Positions 5,946 to 35,712 of a DNA stretch of 64,000 nt are shown piece by piece (position 1 is the stretch's first letter; each line of letters opens with the position of its first letter). Source of the stretch: Eutreptiella sp. 'Long Island Sound 2002' (lineage: Eukaryota; Protista; Euglenida); assembly GCA_964036045.1 (NCBI GenBank), contig OZ038378.1, positions 181,040,001 through 181,104,000 on the forward strand, given 5' to 3'. Below the pieces are notes generated by a model. It made no database searches. It was not told the DNA's origin and was given only the letters and a program-made list of their open reading frames with translations. A program made the translations under genes and the position numbers.

Positions 5946-6094
5946 TGTGCGATTTTTGTTTGTATTTCATTGCAGTTGTATTGTATTGTGTCAGGTGTGC
6001 TATTGAATTGAGTTGCTGATGTGGCTCATGCGGTGACCTACAGCCGCCCCAACAGCTGGTATCTGGTTACCCCGAAATGATAGAATCACCGAGC

Positions 6095-9000
6095 AGGACA
6101 TGGGAATGCTCATGACCCCCCCTCATGCAGAGGTTCACGGCGGTCTTGGCTCGCAAGGGGATGGCCGTAGACTGGCAGTTCGGGGCCATGCCGGGCTCTA
6201 CGGCAGCGCCCCGGTATTCCTGGCACAGCGCAGGCTTTAGCGAGGTCAAGAAGAGAACCACGTCTTGACCCTTGATGTCTCCAAGGCTTTCGACACCACC
6301 CCGCATGGGGCTCTGGCCCTCCTCCCGCGCCACATGGGGGTCCCAAAGGAGCTCATTAAGCTCTTCCACACCCTCAGTTGTGCCTCCACAGTGCGCATTG
6401 CCACTGTGCACGGCCCCACCCCGAACATCCGCCTCCATCGAGGCTTGCGGCAGGGCAGCACGGAAAGTGCGGTGCTATATCTCCTCCTCCTGGAGCCCCC
6501 CGTGCAAAGCCTTGCCACCAAGGCCTAGGGAGATACCCGCCACGCGGTGCCGCCCCTGGTACAGGCCTATTGCGACACCTACTGCTAATAGCACACACGC
6601 TACCGCAGTTTCTGGAGTACGCAGACGCAAATTGGGCGTTACTTGGCGGACATGGGCATGTCCCTCTATGTTCGCAAATGTGCGTACGCCACCACGGCCC
6701 GCCTCTCCTCAATCATGGTGCACCTAGACCCGGACGATGCGGTTGCTCCGTGGGTCTGTCTGGTGGCCAAGAGTGACGTACCGTACCTGGGCCTCAGGCT
6801 TGACCCTACGGGGATGGCATCCATGAAGGAGAAACACGTGCTCCGCTGTGAAGTTGGTGCCCCATGAGGTGATGGCAGCGGTCGTTGGTGGCATGGTACG
6901 GTACGCGGCGCCGCACTTGTCGGACACTGTAGCAGAGATCGTGCGGTTGAATGCTGCCATCAAAATTGCGGCCTTGCAGTTTGAAAACCTGCCCAAAGAC
7001 CTGTCCAATATAGTGGTCCAGTATGGCAAAGGGCTCAAGTTGGCGGATATCCGAGTCCTGTGCCGCGATTCCGTGGTAGCGACAATAGCCCAACTCACGC
7101 ATCATCGCTCGGCGGTGGTCAAGGGTGAGCTGCAGGCCCTGCTGGACAACTTGCATGCGCAACATGGGGTGCGCGGCCAGTTTTTGGTTCCGTCGACGGC
7201 GTTTGCATCACACACAGGAGACACGTGGATTGACTGTGTACTCAGGGCAATGGGGACATTGGGCGTCGGTCTCCTCATGCTGTCCTCGGTGTACTCATGC
7301 GCACACGCCCATTTGCCACAAGTGCAGTGGGCCGGACTGCGGTGGGCAACCCGATCCTACACTTTCAACGGTCGGGACGTCTGTGTGCTTTCCGGGCCAC
7401 GCACGGAAGAGGCGGTACGATCCCTGACGGACCCGGCGAACGACCTCTTGCATGCGAGTCTTCCATGCCATGTGCCTGGGCACTGGGCCGCGCGGCTTCG
7501 GGACTGCGACGAAGACCATCTGCACCTCCCAGCTACAGGGGTCGGGCCCACCATGCTAGGCCACGTGTGGTTAACGGGCCTCCAAGCGTTATTCCAATCC
7601 CGGTTGCCCAGTCTGCCGACCCATCGTCTTCTTCACCCGGTGCGGCACAAGAAGGCCACCAAGCGCACGAGGCAGTCCGCCACGGGCGATGCGTATGTGT
7701 TAGGCGGCTACAGGGACAACAACGGGAACCCGGAATGCCCAAGGTTGTCCATGCCGTTCGCCCCTCCGGCCTCACTGATGGTCTTGCCGGGGGATGTCCT
7801 TGACGGGCATCGACGGCAAGAAGATCCGGCGTTGGTCCCCCTTCTTACTCCACATGCAGGGGGTGGCATCGAGCTTCCGCCCCTGTGGGTGGTACACGGG
7901 GTATCGGCGTTCGACAGGGCATGTGCAGCGGTATGGGGACGTGCGGAATGGGCCATCGTCTTGCTGGTGCCAGCGGCCGGCCCCTGTTGCGGATGACATC
8001 CTGGTCCCGGAAGTAGTCAGGTTGGTCAATGTGCCGCATGACCCGCATGTCGCCGTCACATCGCTGCAAGAAGGTGGAGCGGTGGAGCAGGGAACGGTGG
8101 TGGTATACCAGCCGCACGGATCGATGGCGGTGTGGGGAGCGGAGTTCGCTACAGCACTGGAGGCCATCTGGTCCACATGCGGGTGCGAAATACATTGGCG
8201 GCCGCACGGGGTGCATCGACCGAATGACATACTTTCCCCAGAGCTGACGGCGTCCAATGCGGCGTTGCTGGGGAGGGTAGTGGTCAATTCACATTCGGAC
8301 GTGGCGTGGCTAGAGCCCCACAGGTACTGCTGGGTGCCTATGGCGGCGAGGGTTACCTCGTCTGATGCCTCTCCCCAGGAGGAAGGGGCCAGTAACGTGG
8401 CGGTGGCGGGCCATGGTAGCCCCACATGGACGGGTGCCATCCATGGCACGGTCCTTGAGGCGGAGATTATTGGGGCAGCAACTTTCCTACTGCACACGTC
8501 TCCCTCCGGCCTAGCGGTGCATGTGGTTGACGTGTCTATCATTGGGGCGCATTTGCGTAGAGCCCCGGAAGCACTATACCGAGGCATCAAGGGACCGACT
8601 TCCCACTTCATCAACCAACACGCCCTGAATTGGGTAGTGGAAGGGTTGCGTCGGCTGCCATGCAGGGTTTTAGGGCCCCATCACTGGGTGGTACGGCAGA
8701 GCTCGCACTTGGCGGCCGTCTCGCTTGAGGAGCCGGATTTTGCTGCGGCTCACGCGAAGGCCCTGCCTGTACACCTCATGCTGCCCAAGGAGCACGCGAC
8801 CCTCTTGGTACCTGATGAGAATGGGTTGCTAGAGCCTCACGTACCTTCCATGCGTGCCCTCTAGCTGGTCAGAGAGGCGGCGTGGGACTCGCTGGCAGCA
8901 CACACTGGGGCCCACACGCCGTTGGCTGGTGCCTGCGAGGTTGTACCCCTGGGAATGGGGCATCATGGCCGTGCACATAGGGACATGCTGCGTGCGAGAG

Positions 9001-12000
9001 ACGGCCGTCTCCCCACCATGCAAGTCATGCGACGATGGCGGCAGAAAGTCACCCGTAGGTTGATTCCCGCACTTCCCTGCATCTTCTGTGGGGGCCCGAG
9101 GAAGACACGGGCCAGATGCGCATCAGGTGCGAATGGGATGAGGCGGTTGCGCGGTTGCTGTGTGCGAAGGTTGAGGAGTTCATGACGGATCTGCCAGTCA
9201 CCGACAGGGCCATGGGGTTCATGTCCTGGAAGGAACACGGGTGCAAGTGGACGGAGTCCCTAATGGTATGGGTGGTCCCAGGTGACCTCTGGCGGCTCTT
9301 CGCGATGGTGCGAGCTGCCTCGTCCCGGGGCCCGGCGAAGGCCAAGCCGTTCCTAGAGGACATGATCCTGCTGGGCGAAGATGGTTACGCCTGGAGAAAT
9401 CATCGACTCGCAAGGATCATGCAGCTGCCGCCAGGGGATCGGAGGAAGGAGACGTACTCATTCCTTCGAGGTGACACGCCATTCTGCCCGCTAGCTGGCA
9501 GGGTCCGGCATTTACCCCTGTGGAACCCCTTCGACGGGCTGCCGGGCGACCTTCATGCGGCCTTTCAGCGGGCACCGCTGCATGCGCTTTTGGTATCCCG
9601 GTCGTACATTGCGTACAATGAGGCTATGTCCACGTTTCCCCAGTGGATGGCGGCTGCGGCACAGGCCTTGAGTGCGTGGCTCCAGTCTTGGGTGACCGAG
9701 GACTTCGCCGCGTTCCGTGCACGGTCCACGGAGGTGTCCGCGCAGTCGTGGGCCTCCATCCGCGGCACCATGGTACGCGACTCGGATGGCCACAATGAGC
9801 CATGGCTCAAGGTGTTTGTAGGCTTTCTTGCAGTCGGGAGTGTCATGGGCTGGCCCGGAGATGTGCTGCCGGTCTTCCAACAGCCGTTGTGCTCCCTTCC
9901 GGTCCTGGCGGTGGCCACAATGTTGGACATGGGGGAATTGTGGCTGTATGATCGGCGGCTGCGGAGGGTCATCCCAGTGGCCGAGGGGCACAGGTGCATG
10001 GCGGTCCTAATAGAACCTAAGCAGCTTGTGCTGGTATAGGGAGACGACGTACCTGGTCGCGTCGCGGCAGTGCTGCTGTCACTGCCAGACGGGGATGACA
10101 ATGCGTTAGCGGAAACGTGTCTCACATCGGATCCTCTGCATCTGGAGCCGGTGGTGGAGGCCCAGTCACGTGGGCAATGGTTGGTGATCGCGTCGGCTAA
10201 GCGCCCCGCTCAAGCAGGCGTAGATGTTATCGTGGTTATGGTGCAAGACTACGGGTGGCGGCTGTTAGCGGGGGTAAATCGCATCTCCGGGTAGTGTGGT
10301 GGCCCAGACTACTTGAGTGCCTCTTGGGTGGGTCCGGCGGGCAGCCAATTCTTGCCCCGGCGGCAACGTGGGACCAGGCACCGCAGAGCCCGCTCCATAG
10401 TGCCACCGCACGTGCCTTGGTGAGTGCGCTACACCACTGCCACGAGGCCTGTAATGATGTTTGGCGGGTGGTGTGGTCTCAACGTTGTAAAGGTGCTGTG
10501 TCCCCTCCCGGTCGATACTTCCACTTGTTTGCAGCAGGTGTGGTGTTGCGGCACCAGGTACATTGGGTACATTAGTGGGCCTCTGTCCCACTGTGTGAGC
10601 CCTGTCGTGAGAGAGCTGGCAGGGGCTGGCCCAAAGCCAAATGGGCGTTGCGGCATTTGGGACAAATGTCCTCGAGCGCGTGGAAGGTGATCAGGCGTGA
10701 CCTGCAGGAAGTGCAGGTGGATGGGGTGCGCTGCCCTGATGATCCAACTGCTGTGCTCCCCCTGCTACTATGGTGGGCGGCACTGGACGGTGACTCCTGG
10801 GTCCTGTGGCTCTGGCATCACAAAGGGGACCCGGCGACATCATGAGGGGAGGACGGAGTGCATGTGCAAAGCGGTATGGCCAGAGTGAAGCGCATACTGG
10901 GCACTGTTCGAAGCGTTGTTGAAGCAACATAGATGGTGTTATGGACGTGGCCTCGTCCGGGCATATGCATGCGGCAACGGCGGGTGCGATGTGACGGCCA
11001 TCGCAACGTGGCAGGTCGTGCCGGCCGGATAGTGCGCATTACCGCCCCCGCATGCACAGCTGGGTCGAAATACAGCTGCGCCCGCCTGCCCCGGGTTGTT
11101 GCCTACAATAGTGGGGTGTCATGGGTCGTCCTGACCAGGGTAATAAGGCCCAAACCCCTGTAGGGTATTCCCATGGCACCGGGGTCTATTGGTCTTGAGG
11201 TCAGGGGACACCCTATACCCCCACAAGGTTTCTCTTGGGGCCCGTGGGCAGCCCCATTACCTCCTTGAGTTGTTCCTGGGGTCAAGGGGCACCGCCATAG
11301 CATAGCTGTACCCCAGACCCCACGTATGTACGCCCCTCCAAGCCCATAAATCTTGCATCGAGTTCACCGACCAACCTTCGCCACCCGTCACCCACCATCG
11401 GCATGTACCACCCCAAGTATCGGGGCCGCCCACGGGCCCCAGGAGAAAATCTGTGGGGGTATAGGGATGTACTGTGTCGGTGGCGGGTACAGTGTCAAAG
11501 GTGCACAGGTGGGGGTCGTACGCTGCAACAAGTAGCCAAGCGGGACGCAATGGCGGTGTGTGCGGGCGATGGGGCAAGGCGAAGGCGGTGGCAGTAGGCA
11601 CGGAGTGCCACAGGCTTGGCAGTGTAGGCGATGATGAGGTGCTGTACATGCCGGTTATGGCCGTCCGGCGCAAGTGGCAAGGCGGTCGTGTGGCGAAGCA
11701 TGGTGGGCAGGGCGGCACGACAAGCGCGGCCTGTGGTGGCCCATTGTACACAATATCTGTATGAGAGGTCCAGGGGGTGAGGCAAAGGCCAATGCTATAA
11801 GTAGGCATACCACGTCGTCAGTGGCTGCCGAACGTGCGGCCTGACCACCGCTGCGGCGGAGATGGCACAACCACGGAAGCTGGCCAATCCGTGCAGGTAA
11901 GGGTCAAGGGTAGGCGTCAGGGCATTGTATGTGGGCCAGACGAGGTGAACCTGGTTACCACGGCCCAGGGCGAACCTCTGGTGGGTACCCCTTCAGGGGG

Positions 12001-16140: not shown

Positions 16141-18550
16141 CTAGCACACCCTATTCTGCGCGGTCTTTATAGATAACGAGGGTGTGCGGGTAGATGCCAT
16201 CATGCCATAAGGCACACACCCCATCCACATTGTTGCCCCTGCACGAATGGAGAACAAATCCAAACATGTTGCTGCCTCACCACATTTGCCTGAGCAACCC
16301 AAAAAGAAAAGGTACACGCCATGTGCACACGTACAAATCTTCCCATGTTCCCCTATCCTGAGGGCCTGGGTGAGCGCCCCCCCTTTACCAAAGAAAAAAT
16401 TTGGACAAAGTCTTTCACCTTCACACTATGTTCCTCAACATAATCAGCGCAATACAATAATCAGATATATTATATTATCAATCGTGTACCTGGTGAATAC
16501 ATGGAGGCAACCCAAAGTGGTGACCACAAGTAAACATGTACAAATTGACAACATGATTTATGTAGTACTTATAATATCCAACAGTGGTCGAAGATATAAC
16601 TTGTTGAATAACATTACAACTTTTGGAAAAGTGATGCACATGACCCATTGTGCTTTACAAATTCTATTGCCTTCGGCAAGGCACCTAGACGAGGGGCGAG
16701 CAGCCCCGAGACACGAACAGCATGCCCTGGGGACATATGCTACGGCTATATGGGTGACTGGAGTGCAAGTCTCCACAAATGATCACCCAAACCCATTGCA
16801 AAGCCGACTGTTTTTTTTAGAACAAAAGGTCACAGTTTTGAAAATTTTTGGGGCCCCGCCGCCTTGTGCCCCCCCCCCCCCCCAAAAAAAGCGGCACCCA
16901 GGTAGGGGGGGGGGGGGGGCTGGGGGATCAAAATCAGAAAATTCGTTGGGGGATAAGGTTGTCTCCCAAAATGATGATTCTACAAGGGGGAAAACATCCA
17001 ATATCACACATTGGGGTATGCTAAGCGAATACCCCCAAAAGGGGGTGGTACATGGCGCTCATGCCTGCGCTTGATCTAACAACCCTCTTTCAGGTGATTT
17101 TGATTTACCACGGCCTTTAAGGGTCTGCTAGGGTCCGCAATGGTGGGAGAAATGACATGGCTACTATTCCCATGGGTCCCATACGTACATACACCATAAA
17201 ATGCTTTCAAGGAGTCTTCATCAAACTCACACATGTCCCAATGGATATTCACTGTTCATGGACATCCAAGCATGCCCACACATCATGGGCCAGCAACCTA
17301 TCACCCACCCCACCTGGGCTGATCCACATGGGCATCAGGAAAGCCAGTGTTATCCCTTCCCCCCGTTATCAGGGTCAGGTCAGAGTGGCATAAGCGGTGG
17401 ATATATGCCCCCAGCATTTGAGTCTGGGACCCTCCAGGGTGCCCTGCAGGCAGGTGAGGACCCCAGCGTGGCGGTGGGGCTATGTCATAAAGGTGAAAAG
17501 GCGTACAGTGGGCACAAGTTGGTACAGCCTCGACAAGGTGCTCTCTGTAGAGTAACAACTGCAAAGAGTAGGTCCGCTGCTTCTCCTGAAGGACCTCTTC
17601 GACCCGCAGTGCTTTACTCCTTTGGAGCCATAACCGTTTGTCAACTTAGTCGCAAATATTTCACTTATTCGTTCAAAGAGCGTGCGCAAGAAAGTCCATT
17701 GCGGAATCCATTTTTGCGACCGATTTCGCATTCCTCAGCCAAAGCTGTGCACGCTTGGCACAGCGTCAACAAAATCGTACACGTGGACACAGGCGAGAGT
17801 GATAGACATGTATGGTTGGCAGATCGACAGTGTTGATGGAGCCTGTGGGAGATGTACTCTGTTGGACAGAGCTGTCCAACAGGAGCTGACTGGCGATGGT
17901 TGGTTCTGCACTTGGTTGTGTTGTGTGGCAGTGTACCTCCGGGCTGTGTGTGGTTGTGGGGGGGTGTGTGTGGGGTTGGGTACCGCTTGAGTGCCCAGAC
18001 GCGACCGGCAAGTCTACTGAGGTATCCTCAGGGGCTGAGAAAGCCCTTCCGCAACTGTGTAGTATTGGGTGTAGACTGCGTGTAGAGTGCGTAGAGGGGG
18101 CGCATACAGTGCTCATGGAATGTGTATGGAGGGTGCATAAAGCGTGCATAGTGCATATAGTACCACATAGGCGCTTAGAAAGCACACCGACGGCGCATAG
18201 AGGATGCTTTTAGTGCCGCATAGGCGGCGAATATAGTGCGCATAGAAGGCCCGCATAAGGGGTACATAAAGGGCGCAGAGAGGGCGCATGGAGATGTGCT
18301 AGAGAGATGTCGGATAGGCCAATGGTCTGTGGGTGTGTGGCAGGTTGAAGATGCGTTTGGCAAAGATTTTCGTGACAGTTGGCAACCCTTGGCACTGGCC
18401 GAGTGCCAGCCCACAGTACAATTCTTTGCCATTTACGCCACACAGATCCCCCCCGGGACGGCCGGCCCCTCCCTTACGACGTGTCAGACCGAGGGATCAT
18501 CCCCAAGCCACGCATACAGACTGAGCCACACAGACCGTCCGTGTCCCCAG

Positions 18551-25420: not shown

Positions 25421-26569
25421 AGGGATATTGCGCCGAAAATTTCCTTCATTTACAAGGAGGAATACCCCCCCGCCCCTTCAATTTGGGACCTCCCAAAACA
25501 AACCCCCTCAACCCCCCCCCCCCCCCGGGAACCATATCACAACCCACACCAACAAGCTTGTACTCAGGGACCCACTGACAGTGCCCGTTGATCGAGAGCT
25601 GTCGCAATGTGATCATACCCTTGCCCCCCGCATGTGTCTCCAGGGTTGAATAGGGTTGTGTATGCAGGATCCAATAAATGGAATATCAAGAAATCCAATC
25701 CACAAATACGGAGGTTGCCTTGGACTATTTAGGATATCCCCATAGGGGTTTCATGCTCACCCAAGGGGGAGCCAATAATATAGCACATACTCCAATATAC
25801 ACTATGGTACCCCTTAGGGTAGGGTTAAGGCAAGTAAGGGGGTTCAGTTTGGTCGCAGTAGGGCCGGGCTGCAATTGGGGTGTCTGAGTAACCGGATCTA
25901 TCGTAGGTAGGCCTTGGGAAGCTTCGGTTGGAGCGCACTGGGGACGAAGGCCTATTTTCTCACCCAATGGGAGCACATGGGGTGATCTTCCTGGTTGCTC
26001 CGCCTCAATGAACTCCCCCTTTTGGGGGTATTGGAGCAATTGCTCCTGCCCAGGACTCAAAGTTGGAATCCTTTTTGCATTGGGCTGCCTACAGGCCGAT
26101 CATAGGGCAAGGGCACCAAGAAATTTTGGTGACCGCCTCTGCTACCATCTAAGTGGTAGGTAGTATCGCCCTGGGGGTGAGTAATAGTAGAAGCAGAAGC
26201 AGAGTAGAGTGGGCTGGCACTGTACATATAGTGTCAATAGCTGCATGGGACCAACCTGCACAAGTGGGGAGTTCAGCACCTTAAGGGGGGGGGTGTTATC
26301 GTGTTGGGGTTTTTTTTTTGGCCCAGACACTTGCGACCCAAGTACTATCCAAGACTTCTTGGCTTTGAGGAAGTGATATGGCAGGAGTTATGCACCCATG
26401 TGAGTGCTCCCAATTTTGAGGACCTCAATATGGCAGATGTTATGAAGCCATTTCAGTTTGGTGACCCTGAGATGGCCAAAAAGTGCCGCTCTACCTTAGC
26501 AGCAGAATTGAGAGCACCATCGAGTGGCTGCATAACCATCGCTGGATTGGTATGCCCAAACGATAGGCA

Positions 26570-26635
26570 CCTATGCCCAAACGATAGGTACCTATGGCCA
26601 AACCATAGGTACCTGTTGCGCAATCGGCGGAAATT
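26570..26635 (+). repeat. 21-bp tandem repeat (TATGCCCAAACGATAGGYACC), about 3 copies
   Basis: Directly visible. Confidence 0.8.
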
Positions 26636-26822
26636 GTAGGGGCTCAGAGGCAACTTCATGCCCCAAGATATCAACAGTGCAGGGGAGAACGGCACTTCGT
26701 GTGGTGCACGCCTGCAGGCTCTTTTCATAAGGAGAGGGCAGGTCTATCTACATTGGAACAGGGATGGTCAGAAATAGTCAGGAATGTGGACAGGCTCCGC
26801 ATGACATCACTGGACCTCCAAC

Positions 26823-26890
26823 CTCCCTTCCCCAGGACTCGAACTCGGGACGTCTATGCGTTCGTCACGGACTCACCGTGGTAAGACCTG
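26823..26890 (-). repeat. tRNA-derived (SINE-like) remnant
   Basis: Minus strand reads CCCGAGTTCGAGTCCTGGGGAAGGGAGG: a B-box plus a 3' end similar to the 4904-4975 copy. Confidence 0.3.
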
Positions 26891-27429
26891 TGTTCCATGG
26901 TCCGGGATGGAACATTGGGCTCCTGAACACACAACAAGCCCACGGACTGCTGCACCACTGGGTGCCACTTCTGGGTGGGGTGGGCTGAAAGGAGAAGGAC
27001 CTGCGCGAATGCAGCCCGCGTCAGAAAATGACACGGGGTGCGAATTAAAGGGACAAAAACCACACGACAGCTCCACACACACCAGCACAAGCACCCGCAC
27101 CAACCGCCGAGCTCACTACCAAATCCGGCGTTTAGGGGTTGGAAGGAGTAGAAGGAAAGAGATGGATAAAAGCGGGGGATGTTATTCACAGGTTGCGAAA
27201 TTTTGCGAAAATTTCAGACTTTGAGGTGATTTTTGACTTTTTTGCAAAGTTTGCAGAATTTACAAAATTTGGTGCCCCCTGCAGTGGACCCTACAGTAAC
27301 GCGTTGCTGCATCTTAGGCTCCTTTCCTCTTTGGTGAGTGACTCCTCTAGAGGATTGTTGCTGAACATGATGATGATACAGCAGATGCCAGAAAAAAAAA
27401 CATCTCAAGCTGAACTATGGAATTTTACA

Positions 27430-27740
27430 CCTAGTTGAGAATTCTCTCCCTTGCCAATCGTTCCAGCATGCCTCATGACATCTCTCTAAACAATACCCTG
27501 CTCCACTTACTGGTTGCTAACCCGGAGTTCATGGTTGAGTGGCGAAAGTATTGTCGCGCAGAGGGACCAATAGTGCAAACAACCATGACCTGTATAATTT
27601 TGGGATCAGCAAACAGGTGTTTTTTTTTTGTATAGACAGCAGAATTTTGGTAAATCTCCAATTATCATCGACGGAGGTTGAGCGGCCATTTAACCTAGCA
27701 GGGTACGTGGACAACAAGTATCAGCGCCACCTCCCTTGAA
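27430..27740 (+). mobile_element. hAT transposase C-terminal (dimerisation domain) remnant
   Basis: Frameshifted LSSTEVERPFNLAGYVDNKYQRHL resembles the hAT S.A.xER.FS.AG...R..L motif. Confidence 0.55.
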
Positions 27741-28084
27741 GGGATCTCTGTGTTTCATACTGCGTAGCGAGGGTTTGCAGCATTTTTGCGATTTTTTTTT
27801 GCGAAAATCTACCAAATTTTGCGGCACAAAATCACCACCCTTGATTTGTGAATTATCCCCTCCCTGATATCAACAGCACCAGTGACGTTGTACCGTGTAA
27901 ATGTGCCACATATTTGGGGTACCCCAGCTAACCCCTCTGATGGAACTTTCTGGGCATGAAATTGGTGAAACACGCCATCAAGAAAGGAAAATGGGGGCAA
28001 TGGTGAGACGGCAACTCGAAAATGTACCACCTCCATCGTGGGGGGGTCCTTGCTCAGATAGCCGACCCCAACACCCCCCCCCCC

Positions 28085-28110
28085 CTTTCTGAGTGTCTAT
28101 TTTTTTTTCG
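28085..28110 (+). other. Genomic copy (relic) of the euglenid spliced-leader exon
   Basis: CTTTCTGAGTGTCTATTTTTTTTTCG matches the Euglena SL ACTTTCTGAGTGTCTATTTTTTTTCG except for the first base and one extra T. It is followed by CTGCTTAG rather than the GT donor of an SL-RNA gene, and the ATG is at 28124. Confidence 0.85.
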
Positions 28111-28123
28111 CTGCTTAGTTTTC

Positions 28124-29986
28124 ATGTCCGCACCCGTGCGCAGAGCGGCTCTGTGCACCCACGGCACCACAGATTTGGGGGCCGGCCTCCGCATGATGCA
28201 CTCCGCGTACATGTACTTTGTCATGGCGCTGTGCTTTGTAGCTACTGCAGTGCTCCTCCCCTATGCTGACCTAAGCCGGGGGAATGGGCCGTCACGTCGC
28301 TGCATGGCGAAGCAGGCACCTTTCAAACCCGTTACCACGCGTTCAAGCCATGGACTTGCGGCTTCGCACAAGCAGGCCACTCCCGCACAGCGTTCAAGCG
28401 CTGTGCTCGGCCATGCGGATGTTCCTACCTCAGATCAGTGGCCTCCTGTAGCCTCTTCGGTCGAGGGAACTTCGATGGCGAGCGGTGTGCACGGTGGCCT
28501 GATCTTTAGATCCGGGGCTGCTGGTGCTCTCGTGGGTTTGCTGATGCTGTTTGCGCGCGTCGTCAAGCAGCAGCACCGTACGAAGCCACGATCGGCACCA
28601 GCCATCCCAGTTCAGTTCTCTGCCTGCGCCGTCTCTGGCGCAGCTGGTGAGCCGGGCACGCCGCCGCCTATTCCTCCGCCGGCGCGCGGTGAGCCCGCCG
28701 AGGAGACAGAGGCACCGGGAGCCACAGGCGAGACGCGCACGGCAGGCGATCACGGCCATGTCCTGGAGAGCCGCCTGTATGCCCGGCTCTGCCAAGAAGC
28801 GGGCGTTGACACGAAAGTGGGCCTGACGCGGCTGCCGGGCCCGCGCGGCCGGGGCCTCTGTGCGCTGCGGGACGTCCGGGAAGGGGAGGCGCTGCTGCGT
28901 GTCCCGCTGTCGTGCTGCCTCCTGGAGCCGCTCCTGCCCGAGGGCGAGTGGCCCGCGGTCGTGACGGCGGACCCGGACTTCTGCGACACGGCCCTGCGCA
29001 TCGCCCTGCGGCTGCGGTCGCGGCAGGCGGGCCCCTTTTGGGAGCGCTACGCCCGGCTGTTCCCCGCGCCGCAGTCCATGGCCCAGCCGCTGTGCCTCCC
29101 CCCGGGCCTTCTGGCGGAGGTGCAGAACCCGGACCTCGTGGCCACGGCGCTGGAGGAGCAGCAGCGCTTCCGGCGGTACTTCCCGGGGGAGTTCCCTGCG
29201 GCCGATGCCGCCCCCGATGCGTTTCCCGGGGACCTGATGTGGCTGTGGAGGGTGGTCAGCAGCCGGACCATGGACTCGGGCATGCCCGTCCCCCACGACG
29301 CGCTGGTGCCCTTTCTGGACATGGCCAATCACGCGGCGGTCCCCAACGCCCAACCCGCGCACGCGCAGGACGCGCCTTGGGGCTACGAGTTGCGCGCCCT
29401 GCGCGACGTGCGGAAGGGCGAGGAGGTCACGATCTGCTACCTCGAAGGCGTGCCGAACTGGATGTTCCTGCTGCAGTACGGCTTCGTTCCGCGGGGGAAT
29501 CCGCACGAGCGGCTGCCGGAGCTCCCCCTTCCCAAGCGGCTTGGGATCCCGGAGAAAAGCCTCAGAGCCACGTTGCGCAGCAAAGGGGCGCGTGCGATGG
29601 AGGACTCTGCGGTGGTCGCAGCACTGCGCCTGCTCCCGCTTTCGGGTCGGGAGGAGGACTGGTGGGCGTGGGGGTGGGAGGAGGAGGAGGAGGAGAAGGG
29701 CAAGGGGGGCCCAGACCCTCCGCGGACGGTGTCGGCGGAGCTGAGGCGTACTATGCGGTTGCGCACCGCGCTGCAGGTTGCTGCAGAGCGCATGTTTTCC
29801 ACCACGCAGGAGGAGGACGAACGTGCTGTAGACCGCATGATGGCCGGGGAGCAGCCAGGGGACCCCAGGCTTCTGCCGCTGCTCATCTACCGCGTGGAAC
29901 GGAAGAGGGTTGTGTCCATGGCGATCCGCATTCTGGCCGACCATGAAGAGGCGCTGCGGAAAGGGAAGGCCCACGGTCACTATTGA
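28124..29986 (+). CDS. Plastid-targeted SET-domain lysine methyltransferase (Rubisco LSMT/SETD3-like), intronless, 620 aa
   Basis: SET motifs GRGLCALRDV..GE.LL.VP, LVPFLDMANH and EEVTICY...N..FLLQYGF; an LSMT-type C-terminal region (STTQEEDE...YRVERKRVV); an N-terminal signal peptide, S/T-rich transit segment and second hydrophobic segment followed by basic residues. Confidence 0.9.
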   Translation: MSAPVRRAALCTHGTTDLGAGLRMMHSAYMYFVMALCFVATAVLLPYADLSRGNGPSRRCMAKQAPFKPVTTRSSHGLAASHKQATPAQRSSAVLGHADVPTSDQWPPVASSVEGTSMASGVHGGLIFRSGAAGALVGLLMLFARVVKQQHRTKPRSAPAIPVQFSACAVSGAAGEPGTPPPIPPPARGEPAEETEAPGATGETRTAGDHGHVLESRLYARLCQEAGVDTKVGLTRLPGPRGRGLCALRDVREGEALLRVPLSCCLLEPLLPEGEWPAVVTADPDFCDTALRIALRLRSRQAGPFWERYARLFPAPQSMAQPLCLPPGLLAEVQNPDLVATALEEQQRFRRYFPGEFPAADAAPDAFPGDLMWLWRVVSSRTMDSGMPVPHDALVPFLDMANHAAVPNAQPAHAQDAPWGYELRALRDVRKGEEVTICYLEGVPNWMFLLQYGFVPRGNPHERLPELPLPKRLGIPEKSLRATLRSKGARAMEDSAVVAALRLLPLSGREEDWWAWGWEEEEEEKGKGGPDPPRTVSAELRRTMRLRTALQVAAERMFSTTQEEDERAVDRMMAGEQPGDPRLLPLLIYRVERKRVVSMAIRILADHEEALRKGKAHGHY

Positions 29987-31346
29987 GGGGGCCGGGGTGT
30001 GTGGGTGGGTGGGCGGGACTGGCCCGATCTGAGAGGTCACCGCTGCCTTTGCTATGGCCTGTGCGCAACACTCTCTGTCCGTATTCGTACCAGCGGTTTG
30101 CTTGTGTTAACGCAACCCCAGCCCCTTGCGCAGGCACACTCACTCGTCCGGAGCAGAACGAGACAACCGCCCTGGGAAAACAAGGCCTGGGCCCTGCATG
30201 AAGTCGTGGAGTTGTGGGAAGTGCTGAACCCCTATGGCCTTCGGTTCTTCGACGGCAAATACAGACCGCCCATTGCTGAGCCACTGGGGCCCTGGCTGAC
30301 TCGGGTTGACCCACCCGCACTTAAAAATCAGAAAAAGTTTCCTTCGGCGAAAAATGAAACTCACCAACGGGGCAGGCGCTCTGTCCTGCCCGCCCACCCA
30401 CCGAACCACGTCTGGGGTGGTGGCCAGGGTTTTGCTTTAATTTTCGTTCCGGCCGGGGGAGGCTCCCCCCTGGACCCCTCCCCCACTCCCCTAGACCCCC
30501 TCCCCCGTTCCCAGTAGAGGCCAGTCCGGTAGTGTGCCCTCAAGGCCCCCGAGACTAACGGGGCTGTAGCGCCCAACCCCGGAGCCATCCCAGGTAGGTT
30601 CCCTGGGCTAGGCAGGCGCTTGGCGTGCCCTGGGACCCCTTCAACTGCCCCGTATGCACCCCGGCCGCGGGAGTGTGGGACCCAGCCTGCAAGGCAACGC
30701 CACTTGTGCCGTTTGGCAGCCAAGGAGCGTCCCCCCCCCCCCAGTCGTGTCCGCAGTCGTGGGGCGGCCAGACAGCATGTCCCTGTGACCTGGAGGCTGC
30801 GATGTCCTGGCCCAAGACTCCCCAGCGGGCACAGAGTTGGGTCCCCAAGCCTCACTACCGGGCCTCGAGCCAGGCCACACTGGCACCCCACACGCAAGGT
30901 CCCTCCCTCCCCTCCATTGCCCACGTGCACGCACACAAACCACGGGCTCAGCCTCACTGGGGGCAAGGCTTGGCCCCGGGAACGTACAGCAGGTCAAGTG
31001 GATACCACATGAACGTGGGCGAGCGGTCTACCGGCGGTGTCAGCCAGGCATCGCTTGACCGTGTGACCTGTCATGCCACGACACCGCCTCATCGGGGAGC
31101 AGGGCTCGACAGTTCCTGCACGCACACCCAGACACAGGACGATGGTGTCTCCCGCTCACCAGCGCTCCGGTGGGGTCTGGCTGCTGTTGATAATTGGCTC
31201 GCCTTTGGACCCGGACAGTCAGGTTAATCAGCCTCGTGGTTGGGCAGGGAAGGATGCCCAGACCCGGGGGCCTGCTCCTCCTGTATGGCAGTGCAACTAT
31301 TTGGGCGTGTGGCCATACTTGAGACCCATCCTTTGTGACACTAGTT

Positions 31347-31757
31347 GGGCATGCCGGGTTTTCACTTCCGGGGGGGGGGGGGGGGGTCAACAGAGCCCCC
31401 AAAAACTGGGGTGGGGGTTCAGGAAAAGGGCTCAATTGACAGGCACCATTAATCAGCCATTATGAAATCTGGCGCCAAAGGCGCCGAAAATTTTTTTGAG
31501 CATTAAAATTGGTCAATTTTGTTTTACCCAATATATGGCAAATGATGACTTTTTTTGAACCCCCTCGATGCGCTAATTCCAAAAATCCCATTTTCTTTTT
31601 CTCCCGACTTTTGGGCCTGGGTCACCTCCGAGGCGCGGGGTCAGTTTCGGTTGGATTTTGGGGGTCCTAGCAATTGAGCCTTTTTTTGGGGGGGGGTCCG
31701 GCCGGAGTGCTCTATTGAACCCCCCCCCCCCCCCCGGAAACGAAAACCCGGCATCCC
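31347..31757. mobile_element. MITE with long poly-G/poly-C inverted ends
   Basis: ATGCCGGGTTTTCACTTCC(G)nTCAACAGAGC pairs with GCTCTATTGAA(C)nGGAAACGAAAACCCGGCAT; no clear TSD. Confidence 0.7.
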
Positions 31758-34046
31758 TTGTTGTTTGAGAGTAGGTACTTCTTCCACATTGGGGATTTTC
31801 ACCTAGTTTCACCAATTTCCACCTTTTTTCACATTTTTTTTTGCTCATCCACATCCACTCTTTGCTAGGTTGATTTCTCCCCGCCACGGGACCTCGAGAA
31901 GGCAGAGGTGATGTATCCATGTTGTTTTCCCCCCATCATGGGAACCCCGAGCAGGCACAGTTGATGTCGGACCCGAAGATCATCATCAAGGCCGAGGGAC
32001 AATCCAGCATCCTCTCCAAGTGCTGTATCACATCCAAGTACTATAATCGAAGGTGACCTCATGGGCTTGATTAACACCAAGGATCCTTCGTGCTAGCCAA
32101 GATGTACCATGCCGTCATCCCGAGACGTGCGGCAGCGGGGCTATGCCAGACGGCCATACCGAGCACCCCGAGTCTATTGTCCCTAACCCAGATGGACCAC
32201 CTCCCCATCCCCATCCCCAATGGCAGAGGTCTCCCAGGGTCTACAATGGGACATGCTCCTGAGGCAAGGGTGATATAAGGGCATTTGGAAGGGGTGTGCT
32301 TGGGGACTCTTTAGGGGAACCTGGTCTGAAAAGTAGTGCGCAGTGCGCTCGCAGTGCAAGGGCGCCCCCTATGAGGCCTTGTCCCAACCCAACCCAACCC
32401 CTCGGGCCTCCAACTAATGCATAGGTTCTGGCCATTGTTGGCTAGAGTCTTGGTGCCGAAGGCGTAGTGCCAGGCACACAACCAGGAGGAAATTTTCTTT
32501 GTTCATCACATCCCAACAGACCCAGAGTTTTGATTGTATTTGTGTGTGCAGTTTGCAATTTGAAAAAAATTTGGTCCTTGATCTTTTTGCCTTCCGCCAG
32601 CAGTGGCGGCTCAGAGATGGCCCATATCCTAGTGGTATGTGCGTTGGAGGCATACCTTGAAGGGAGAGGTTCACACCCCACTGCAGACATTTCTATGATC
32701 TGCCTCAGACTGTTGTTACGTTCACAAACAAAGCCTAGCACAACAGTAGGGACACAAATTCTCAGATGTTGTGGCTTTTGGTAGCAGTCAATACACCATC
32801 AGCACTAGCAGTAGCGGCAGCAGCAGCAGAAGCAGCACCGTTACATCCTGTGTTGCCTGCCTGGAAAGGACAAGGGGGGGGGGAGGCATGTGCACTGAAC
32901 CCCGCCCCCCCGCCGCTGTCTGCCCCCCCCCCCCTTTGCGGAGCCTCTGACCACCACAACCCTGTTGGGGTCGAGTAGTTCAACAGGCAGCCCCTCGCCC
33001 CCCGTGACCTCTATATCCAGCTTGTGGTGCCCTTTCCACAGTTCTACAAACGAATTATGCCATCCCCTCCATAGCAGAAAGCAACACAAACAATAGGAGT
33101 TGGTGTGTGCAGCAACACCCGGTTATGGACCGTCAAACACAGAAGGCAAGTCCTTTGATTTTGAGATTGGTGGGCATGCTGGAGCTATCACCCACATAAT
33201 CTGGTGGATGGTGTAACAGCAGAGCTGGTCAGCTCAATGGTGGTGGGGTTTAGCAGGATCATTGGGGTCAAACTGTTTTCCAATATTTGTGAAGTGTTCC
33301 ACATGTTTTTTTTGATGCAGGCGTGCGCATAGCGTTGCATGCTTGCAATTGATTGGAGGAGAATTTTCAGAGGCAACCAGCCGTAGTCAGTGTTTGTGCC
33401 TCCCGACTGCCCTGTTTTCCCAGATGGGAGGGGACTTTAGTCCATTCCACCTCCTGACCTGTTCTACCGAGTTCCCTGCACATTTTTTCTGTCCCATAAC
33501 GGGACATTACTGAGCTGGTGGTGGGAACCAACCTAGTTGTTCAAGGCCCACTTTCCTGCCTTGCCAGTGGTACCCAAGAAAGCAAGGGGAGGGAGTGTCT
33601 CGAGACCGCGCTTTTCAGAGTGGCAAGTAGTTTGAGGGCATGGACCGCAGTGTACATTTCTATTGTATTTGGGTGGTATTGTATGTCTGTTTTAGATTGT
33701 TGGGCAAGAATGTGCGGATGGCGCAATCTCCGTCTGCATAGATGCCACAAGCTCTGGCATACCCATTGGTCAACAGTTTGTTGACGTCGTTGCGCACCTC
33801 TCAACTTTACCCTGTATAGGCTGGCGGAGGCTCATGCAGGCGGCTTAGGGTCGTCAGCGATTGTCTAAGCCGCAGGAGGTTGGTGAAGGATTGTGAAGGG
33901 GGCGGACCGCTCTCAATGACCGGCAATGTGCAATGTCCGGCGCCCCCCCCCCCCCCCCCCGCATTGGTCATCACTGCACATGGGGTGGGGATGGATAGGG
34001 TTGGCAAGGGTTGCGCAGAAATATATGGGTTTGCCGAGGACATAGG

Positions 34047-35240: not shown

Positions 35241-35712
35241 CAGGGTTTTGCTTAGTGTCCGTCCTACCCCAGGGGGGGGGGGGTCTGGCAGAATTTCAGG
35301 GTGGGTGGGTGTCCAACCCCCCCCCCCCCCCGGGGTGGGGTGGGACTTTGTGGGGGCCCTTGGGTCTATCGAGCCAGTGCCACTTCTTTCTTTCTTTTGT
35401 TGCAGGTTCCATGTAACATGTTTATTGGTGTGTTTACATGGTGTGTTTACATGGCATTGCATATCACGTGTGCATGCCCCACGCCCATAAAGGGGCTAGG
35501 ATGCACTGTCATTTCTGTCAAATGCGAAGGGGGCAACGCTAGAACCCCACTGACATGATGGTTGTTCACCTCTGTGGAAAACTTGGTCTTCTGTATTGCA
35601 TGTCTCAGTTGGGTACGTGGGTGGGTGGGTGGGTGGGTGGGTGCCAAAATTCTGGGTGGGTGGGTCCCTGAATTAACCCCCCCCCCCCCTAGGGTGGGTA
35701 AGCAAAACCCTG
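35241..35712. mobile_element. hAT-type MITE
   Basis: Perfect 14-bp TIR CAGGGTTTTGCTTA; perfect 8-bp TSD CCCGGACG (35233-35240 and 35713-35720). Confidence 0.92.

Follow-up and report, generated by a model that had tools for sequence, protein, structure and literature searches.

Does the gene that follows a spliced leader (SL) string in the DNA of the euglenid Eutreptiella sp. 'Long Island Sound 2002' descend from a trans-spliced mRNA that was written back into the chromosome? The locus lies in a stretch of 64,000 nucleotides (64 kb; assembly GCA_964036045.1, contig OZ038378.1, positions 181,040,001 to 181,104,000 of the forward strand), hereafter the window, in which all coordinates below are counted; there, an SL-like string stands just upstream of an uninterrupted gene for a SET-domain protein. 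In Euglena the SL is ordinarily attached to mature messenger RNAs alone. An initial annotation made from the letters of the window had read this arrangement as a post-trans-splicing junction written into DNA. That core claim is upheld by the anatomy of the SL, 5' untranslated region (UTR) and coding sequence (CDS), by DNA unitigs and by SL fusions throughout the genome, and we consider it highly probable that the gene goes back to a mature trans-spliced mRNA that was copied into DNA.

Anatomy of the junction

The string at 28086-28110 reads TTTCTGAGTGTCTA-T9-CG and agrees with the published leader of Euglena gracilis (ACTTTCTGAGTGTCTATTTTTTTTCG) except for one additional T, giving T9 where the canonical leader has T8, and the loss of the first A; it also agrees with the exons of SL-RNA genes in the same genome. 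The match is unique in the window and was not obtained in any of 100 shuffles. The 26 nucleotides (nt) counted in the initial annotation correspond to this string plus the C at 28085. The SL stops exactly at the 3' boundary of the exon (CG), with no more element sequence beyond it, and continues into CTGCTTAG, where there is no GT donor. A 13-nt segment (CTGCTTAGTTTTC, 28111-28123) then leads to the ATG at 28124. Two of the earlier observations are therefore borne out at this locus, namely the SL-like string 13 nt upstream of the ATG of an uninterrupted 1.86-kb CDS and, from 28111 onward, the lack of the downstream GT donor that an SL-RNA gene would have.

None of the hallmarks of an SL-RNA gene (GT donor, conserved intron, conserved upstream block, 5S rRNA neighbour) was found here, and an Rfam search of 26000-32000 returned nothing relevant. 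What the locus does have is an SL in the DNA that stops where its exon stops and runs on into a 5' UTR and a CDS, which is the structure looked for in an SL-tagged retrogene. The C12 homopolymer upstream and the TTTCT that follows it together form a 17-nt pyrimidine run preceding the AG inside the SL (Table 1).

Presence in genomic DNA

The initial annotation had raised cDNA contamination of the assembly as a way in which such a junction could be spurious. Unitigs from three short-read DNA runs carrying one organism label (X1, X2 and X3) have an even depth of about 10, 24 and 38, respectively, over the flank, SL, CDS and 3' flank. In X1, one unitig (26987-28102) holds the single-copy flank, C12 and 17 nt of the SL, and a second (28079-30550) holds the C-run, SL, CDS and 3' flank; the same span is covered in X2 and X3 by unitigs that break at the SL, because the SL is repeated in the genome. 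A fourth run (X4), with another organism label, contains identical pieces of the flank and 3' region. Flat single-copy depth over non-coding flank and CDS alike is the behaviour of DNA and not of contaminating cDNA, and the junction can be taken as part of genomic DNA since unitigs at this depth extend over both of its sides.

Leader copies across the genome

The genome (2.28 Gb) was surveyed with a 24-mer of the SL at up to 2 mismatches, which gave 7,483 matches, or about 1 per 300 kb, against 0 for the reversed 24-mer used as control. In approximately 976 of these copies the SL is followed by GT and by the conserved beginning of the SL-RNA intron; they look like SL-RNA genes and are clustered in a few arrays (Table 1), and both of the two that were checked have a 5S rRNA gene on their own strand at a distance of about 0.5 kb. 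The initial annotation had proposed sorting SL hits by what follows them, and the context was read for a sample of 91 sites, all on contig 1. SL-RNA genes account for 8 of the 91, one of them a variant with GA replacing the GT donor, and the SL is joined to other sequence at the remaining 83, mostly with the leader's own AC in front.

Among the joined copies, similarity within several repeat families sets in precisely with the SL, and the homology between two copies of an open reading frame (ORF) for a C-type lectin, 97% identical, is confined to the sequence from the SL onward. One SL-led element, about 190 nt long, has (AAAAAATTCC)n A16 at its end (L008:1-3024 and L058:1-824), a tail like that of non-long terminal repeat elements. 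At 75 sites a full SL is directly followed by TGTCTATTTTTTTTCG, a relict that begins right after the leader's internal AG, and a fresh SL ahead of a full relict was seen at 3 sites only. Two further loci share the same 5' UTR and ORF start, behind one SL in the first (L065) and behind three leaders in a row in the other (L011); the triple leader suggests at least two further rounds of recycling. These arrangements point to SL copies that undergo transcription and a new trans-splicing at the internal AG before being recopied, that is, to repeated recycling. Reverse transcriptase (RT) frames are also abundant (61,141 first-look candidates genome-wide), and the SL fusions, the truncated relicts and this abundance together show that trans-spliced RNAs are often copied back into this genome.

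Large families that start at the SL were also seen on contig 1 (L018, L020, L027, L028, L029, L021 and L024), with open frames of 417-499 amino acids (aa) running off the loci. Their long frames have no Pfam match, three of the families share 23-29% protein identity with one another, and no match between the family ORFs and RT-locus proteins was found in the parts compared; these families may be trans-spliced mobile elements. As to the RT-bearing open frames themselves, many are exactly 1,658 aa long and another set 1,585 aa, and they look like young, possibly active retroelement families.

Copy number and relatives

The sequence from at least 27600 to about 30413, which comprises 2.3 kb from 28086 and the upstream flank, has no other copy in the whole assembly, and neither the assembly nor the short-read contigs contain the CDS a second time at a likeness of 90% or above. 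This single-copy state disposes of the concern, voiced in the initial annotation, that the SL-like string might be a fixed part of a high-copy miniature inverted-repeat transposable element. The same searches for a parent were negative, and the view of the retrogene as a duplicate of a parent gene was not sustained. No orthologue above 42% identity was found in the full library search, and a word-based homologue search, which was dominated by low-complexity words, returned the protein itself only. Two more distant paralogues have gaps of 34 kb and 57 kb within the region that is continuous at this locus. With no closer copy available, the gene is probably the only working one, and it would either have outlived its parent or have replaced it in place.

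The SET-domain gene and its product

The CDS (1,863 nt for 620 aa, stop at 29984-29986) is free of interruptions and has a GC content of 68%, with 79% at third codon positions (GC3), vs 46-55% GC in the flanks; its antisense strand contains a 536-aa ORF. The Pfam SET match (PF00856; aa 242-439) scores 33.4 bits vs a cut-off of 22.4 (E 6.5e-8), and the nearest solved structures are PAP7/pTAC14 (8w9z_J, E 7e-14) and Rubisco LSMT (2h21_A, E 2e-6). By these matches the product is a SET-domain protein of plastid type, akin to PAP7/pTAC14 and Rubisco LSMT.

The N-terminal ~190 aa include two hydrophobic domains, at aa ~28-47 and ~126-148 (Kyte-Doolittle peaks), an arrangement that resembles the class I plastid presequence of euglenids with its signal peptide and stop-transfer anchor. 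The two domains of class I presequences are spaced by a rule of 60 +/- 8 (PMC6242988), and the spacing of ~80-87 aa in this protein falls outside it, which leaves plastid targeting of the 620-aa protein plausible only. The protein on record in the database (P0001; 654 aa, window 28022-29986) begins at an upstream ATG and reads through the C-run and the SL. The gene caller has likely set this start too far upstream, which serves as a warning for annotation. The 90% cluster of the protein consists of the genome-derived member alone, and no transcript contig on record encodes this product.

C-runs

Runs of C or G of at least 10 nt occur about 30 times in the window. The sequence C8 directly before TTTCTGAG is present at 17 genomic sites vs about 2 expected (a rough estimate), and a C-run followed by the SL is common to many other short-read contigs, seen as loose ends at 28074. 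Among the 83 sampled SL junctions, the excess of C-runs before the SL comes from one family, and outside it 2 of 76 sites have such a run vs a background of 0.8% (p = 0.12). The C-run was therefore rejected as a general mark of SL junctions, its excess in this sample being limited to one repeat family, and the genome-wide association of C-run and SL is suggestive. The proposal that C12 represents non-templated C addition at the cap found no support either, since C/G runs are very common and the SL-linked enrichment is weak outside that family. Classical C-tailing of cDNA would give G's on the sense strand.

The C12 pair at 28074 and 30731 was considered as a target-site duplication (TSD) and rejected, because the run at 30731-30742 is part of the ~770-bp repeat and is found at the same place in its other copies. 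Long G/C runs (12-28 nt) are very frequent in general and often stand beside shared short motifs in inverted orientation (31355-31386, 31720-31752, 1000-1060, 16869-16919 and 35272-35331). In one case CCGGGTTTTC..TTCC-G17 and its complement after C16 lie ~330 bp apart and resemble terminal inverted repeats.

Other features of the window

A short tandem array with a unit of ~21 nt (TATGCCCAAACGATAGGTACC-like) occupies 26551-26615 and reaches a summed depth of ~18,000-59,000 in the short-read contigs of X1-X3, as a very high-copy satellite. An open frame of 385 aa at 43670-44827 matches GDSL-lipase (PF00657, 27 bits vs a cut-off of 23.6). At 6093-11190 there is a repeat of ~5.1 kb with many genomic copies at 71-88% identity, whose long ORFs have no Pfam match.

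Table 1. Positions of the features at the SET-domain locus (window coordinates) and of the SL-RNA gene arrays (contig coordinates)
Feature	Position	Strand	Basis or remark
C12 homopolymer	28074-28085	+	5' junction; last C possibly the second base of the SL itself
Relict spliced leader, full length minus first A, T9	28086-28110	+	sequence match
SL-internal AG, candidate trans-splice acceptor	28092-28093	+	suggested by genome-wide relicts
Putative 13-nt 5' UTR of copied mRNA	28111-28123	+	includes second candidate acceptor AG (28117-28118) behind the SL T-run
Uninterrupted CDS, 620 aa + stop	28124-29986	+	ORF analysis
SET domain, aa 242-439	28847-29440	+	Pfam PF00856
Single-copy 3' flank, presumably 3' UTR of copied mRNA	29987-30413	+	no second genomic copy
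Unrelated repeats bounding the single-copy stretch: ~100 bp (30414-30512) and ~770-bp element (30510-31279)	30414-31279	+	
SL-RNA gene arrays	C1 0-0.46 Mb; C2 193 Mb; C3 164.0-164.7 Mb; C4 178.5-179.4 Mb		

Origin of the gene

The route that we propose begins with a mature, SL-trans-spliced and fully spliced mRNA that would have been reverse-transcribed and integrated in chromosomal DNA, fixing 25 nt of the SL at the 5' end and removing all introns. The RT could have been supplied by the abundant intact RT frames elsewhere in the genome. Integration that leaves neither poly(A) nor TSD might reflect capture at a break, truncation of the 3' end or erosion afterwards, all of which are possible, and the parent would then have been lost; the many SL-led copies scattered over the genome agree with a dispersed insertion and subsequent parent loss. 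Present expression is predicted to involve renewed trans-splicing, for which the likely acceptor would be the AG at 28092-28093 behind C12 and TTTCT, with the AG at 28117-28118 behind the T-run of the SL as an alternative. The relicts found genome-wide favour the internal AG, but use of the downstream one would leave no trace in DNA, so it stays a possible acceptor.

Several observations weigh against an origin from a copied mRNA. No intron-bearing parent was found anywhere in the genome, where the best non-self match is 41-42% identical at the protein level, so that the parent copy that should accompany an SL-tagged retrogene is missing; the SL is nearly perfect although the parent is gone, a combination that would imply either a recent event with quick loss of the parent or selection on the relict. 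In L032, the nearest paralogue, a single exon encodes aa 195-613 and no SL precedes it within 1.5 kb, which means that a long exon alone is not proof of retro-origin and that the contrast between this intronless gene and its relatives is partial. As the initial annotation had already remarked, the 3' end lacks both poly(A) and a TSD: the longest runs of A from the stop to 31500 have five letters (A5, 30323-30354), a weak A-rich patch (30320-30365) being the sole tail candidate, and the best direct repeat, of 8 nt, is no better than those of shuffled controls. The three DNA runs belong to a single study and possibly stem from the very sample that was assembled, which makes them a second data type and not an independent culture.

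The agent of the copying is a separate matter from its template. The initial annotation had placed a long interspersed element (LINE) with RT in this window, but none was found there by Pfam searches of 29 ORFs, by tblastn of 10 RT-locus proteins or by a scan for the YxDD motif. Of the LINE-driven retroposition of a mature mRNA that it had proposed, the mature-mRNA origin is retained and the LINE-driven part is dropped, given that poly(A), TSD and an RT in the window are all lacking.

Retro-origin does not by itself imply a dispersed insertion. The cDNA of the gene may have recombined with its own parental locus, as in RT-mediated intron loss, with the SL added by non-homologous joining. Replacement in place would account at once for the missing parent, poly(A) and TSD, and the single-copy flanks on both sides fit it, but the other SL-led copies are dispersed insertions with homology starting at the SL, at least one family among them having an A-rich tail, and the SL has no homology at the parental locus, so that the 5' join would still need an illegitimate event; we find this course unlikely. 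It is still less probable that the copy is a dead processed pseudogene whose frame happens to be open. The lack of RNA evidence, with no RNA run containing the stretch and no transcript contig on record for the product, the protein cluster with its genome-derived member alone, and the capacity of GC-rich DNA to keep frames open by chance, as in the 536-aa antisense ORF, would all agree with a dead copy, but no other copy is able to supply the function and the 620 aa retain an intact SET domain, C-terminal region and two-domain presequence.

Explanations that do without a copied mRNA fare worse. If an SL-RNA-derived or SL-led fragment had landed by chance before a gene that never had introns, the long single exon of the nearest paralogue without an SL, the lack of retroposition hallmarks at the 3' end and the frequency of SL copies (~1 per 300 kb) would need no further comment. 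However, ~7,500 SLs in 2.28 Gb give a chance of only ~1 in 10,000, by a rough estimate, that an SL on the correct strand would end no more than 30 nt from a given ATG; the SL breaks off precisely at the exon end without further element sequence, the 13-nt UTR is as expected from a trans-spliced mRNA, and the sequence behind the SL has no other genomic copy, all of which makes a chance neighbourhood very improbable. An assembly artefact, in which a cDNA or transcript read was built into the contig, is scarcely credible. Even though the SL-CDS junction looks exactly like cDNA and the DNA runs containing it all come from one study, unitigs at a depth equal to that of the flank cover both sides of it in X1, and the same span in X2 and X3, the depth is flat from the non-coding flank into the CDS as in DNA, and the flank and 3' pieces recur identically in X4 under the second organism label.

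Descent from a trans-spliced mRNA is therefore the explanation that we retain, and a wider one can be built on it, which we offer tentatively, as a possibility that we would not yet call probable. mRNA recycling of the dinoflagellate type may operate on a large scale in this genome, each relict SL bringing with it an AG acceptor (behind the 17-nt pyrimidine run in the present case), so that copies could be trans-spliced at once; at this locus the copy would have taken over completely from the intron-bearing parent gene for a plastid SET-domain methyltransferase.

Comparison with known systems

An intronless chromosomal copy of a mature mRNA recalls the processed retrogenes and pseudogenes that LINEs produce in animals by target-primed reverse transcription. 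Unlike those retrocopies, the present locus has no poly(A), TSD, nearby LINE or RT, and its 5' end is complete and not truncated. In the Fink model, introns are lost through RT-mediated recombination of cDNA at the parental locus, normally without bringing in a 5' leader; intron loss of this type would account for the absent second copy, tail and TSD. With the genuine SL-RNA genes of Euglena the locus shares the same exon sequence of 24-26 nt, and it differs from them in lacking the GT donor, the conserved intron, the upstream block and the 5S neighbour. Candidate mRNA recycling or SL-bearing retrocopies have reportedly been noted in Paulinella, a lineage with SL trans-splicing, as far as titles and term counts of the sources (PMC9311404, PMC6053224) indicate.

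The euglenid genome is known for very large introns, both conventional and non-conventional. The full-text literature, including the genome papers of E. gracilis and Diplonema, with subscription journals outside this scope, yielded no account of SL relicts in genomic DNA or of SL-tagged retrogenes from euglenids, and a gene of this kind, known from dinoflagellates, seems to be unpublished in the euglenid lineage. If our interpretation is true, retroposition of trans-spliced mRNAs is not peculiar to dinoflagellates and also shapes the genome in a second, very distant lineage, the euglenozoan one, where the relict leader would serve as a built-in mark by which retrogenes can be found, rounds of recycling dated and intron loss studied. 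It would also provide a possible explanation of how new copies gain expression where promoters matter little and trans-splicing does most.

Slamovits and Keeling are said to have described relict-SL retrogenes in dinoflagellates in 2008, under the name of "mRNA recycling". A truncated relict is reported from dinoflagellates, and TG has been suggested as a non-canonical acceptor (PMC12014239). The euglenid case differs in its lineage (Euglenozoa), in its leader of 26 nt and in relicts that are cut after the SL-internal AG (75 sites), and the locus described here differs further in having a single SL and no parent, and in being known from DNA alone. As in the relict-SL retrogenes of dinoflagellates, however, the SL is encoded in DNA at the 5' end of intron-poor genes throughout the genome (PMC12014239), and, at other loci of the Eutreptiella genome as in dinoflagellates, successive cycles have placed a fresh SL in front of a truncated relict.

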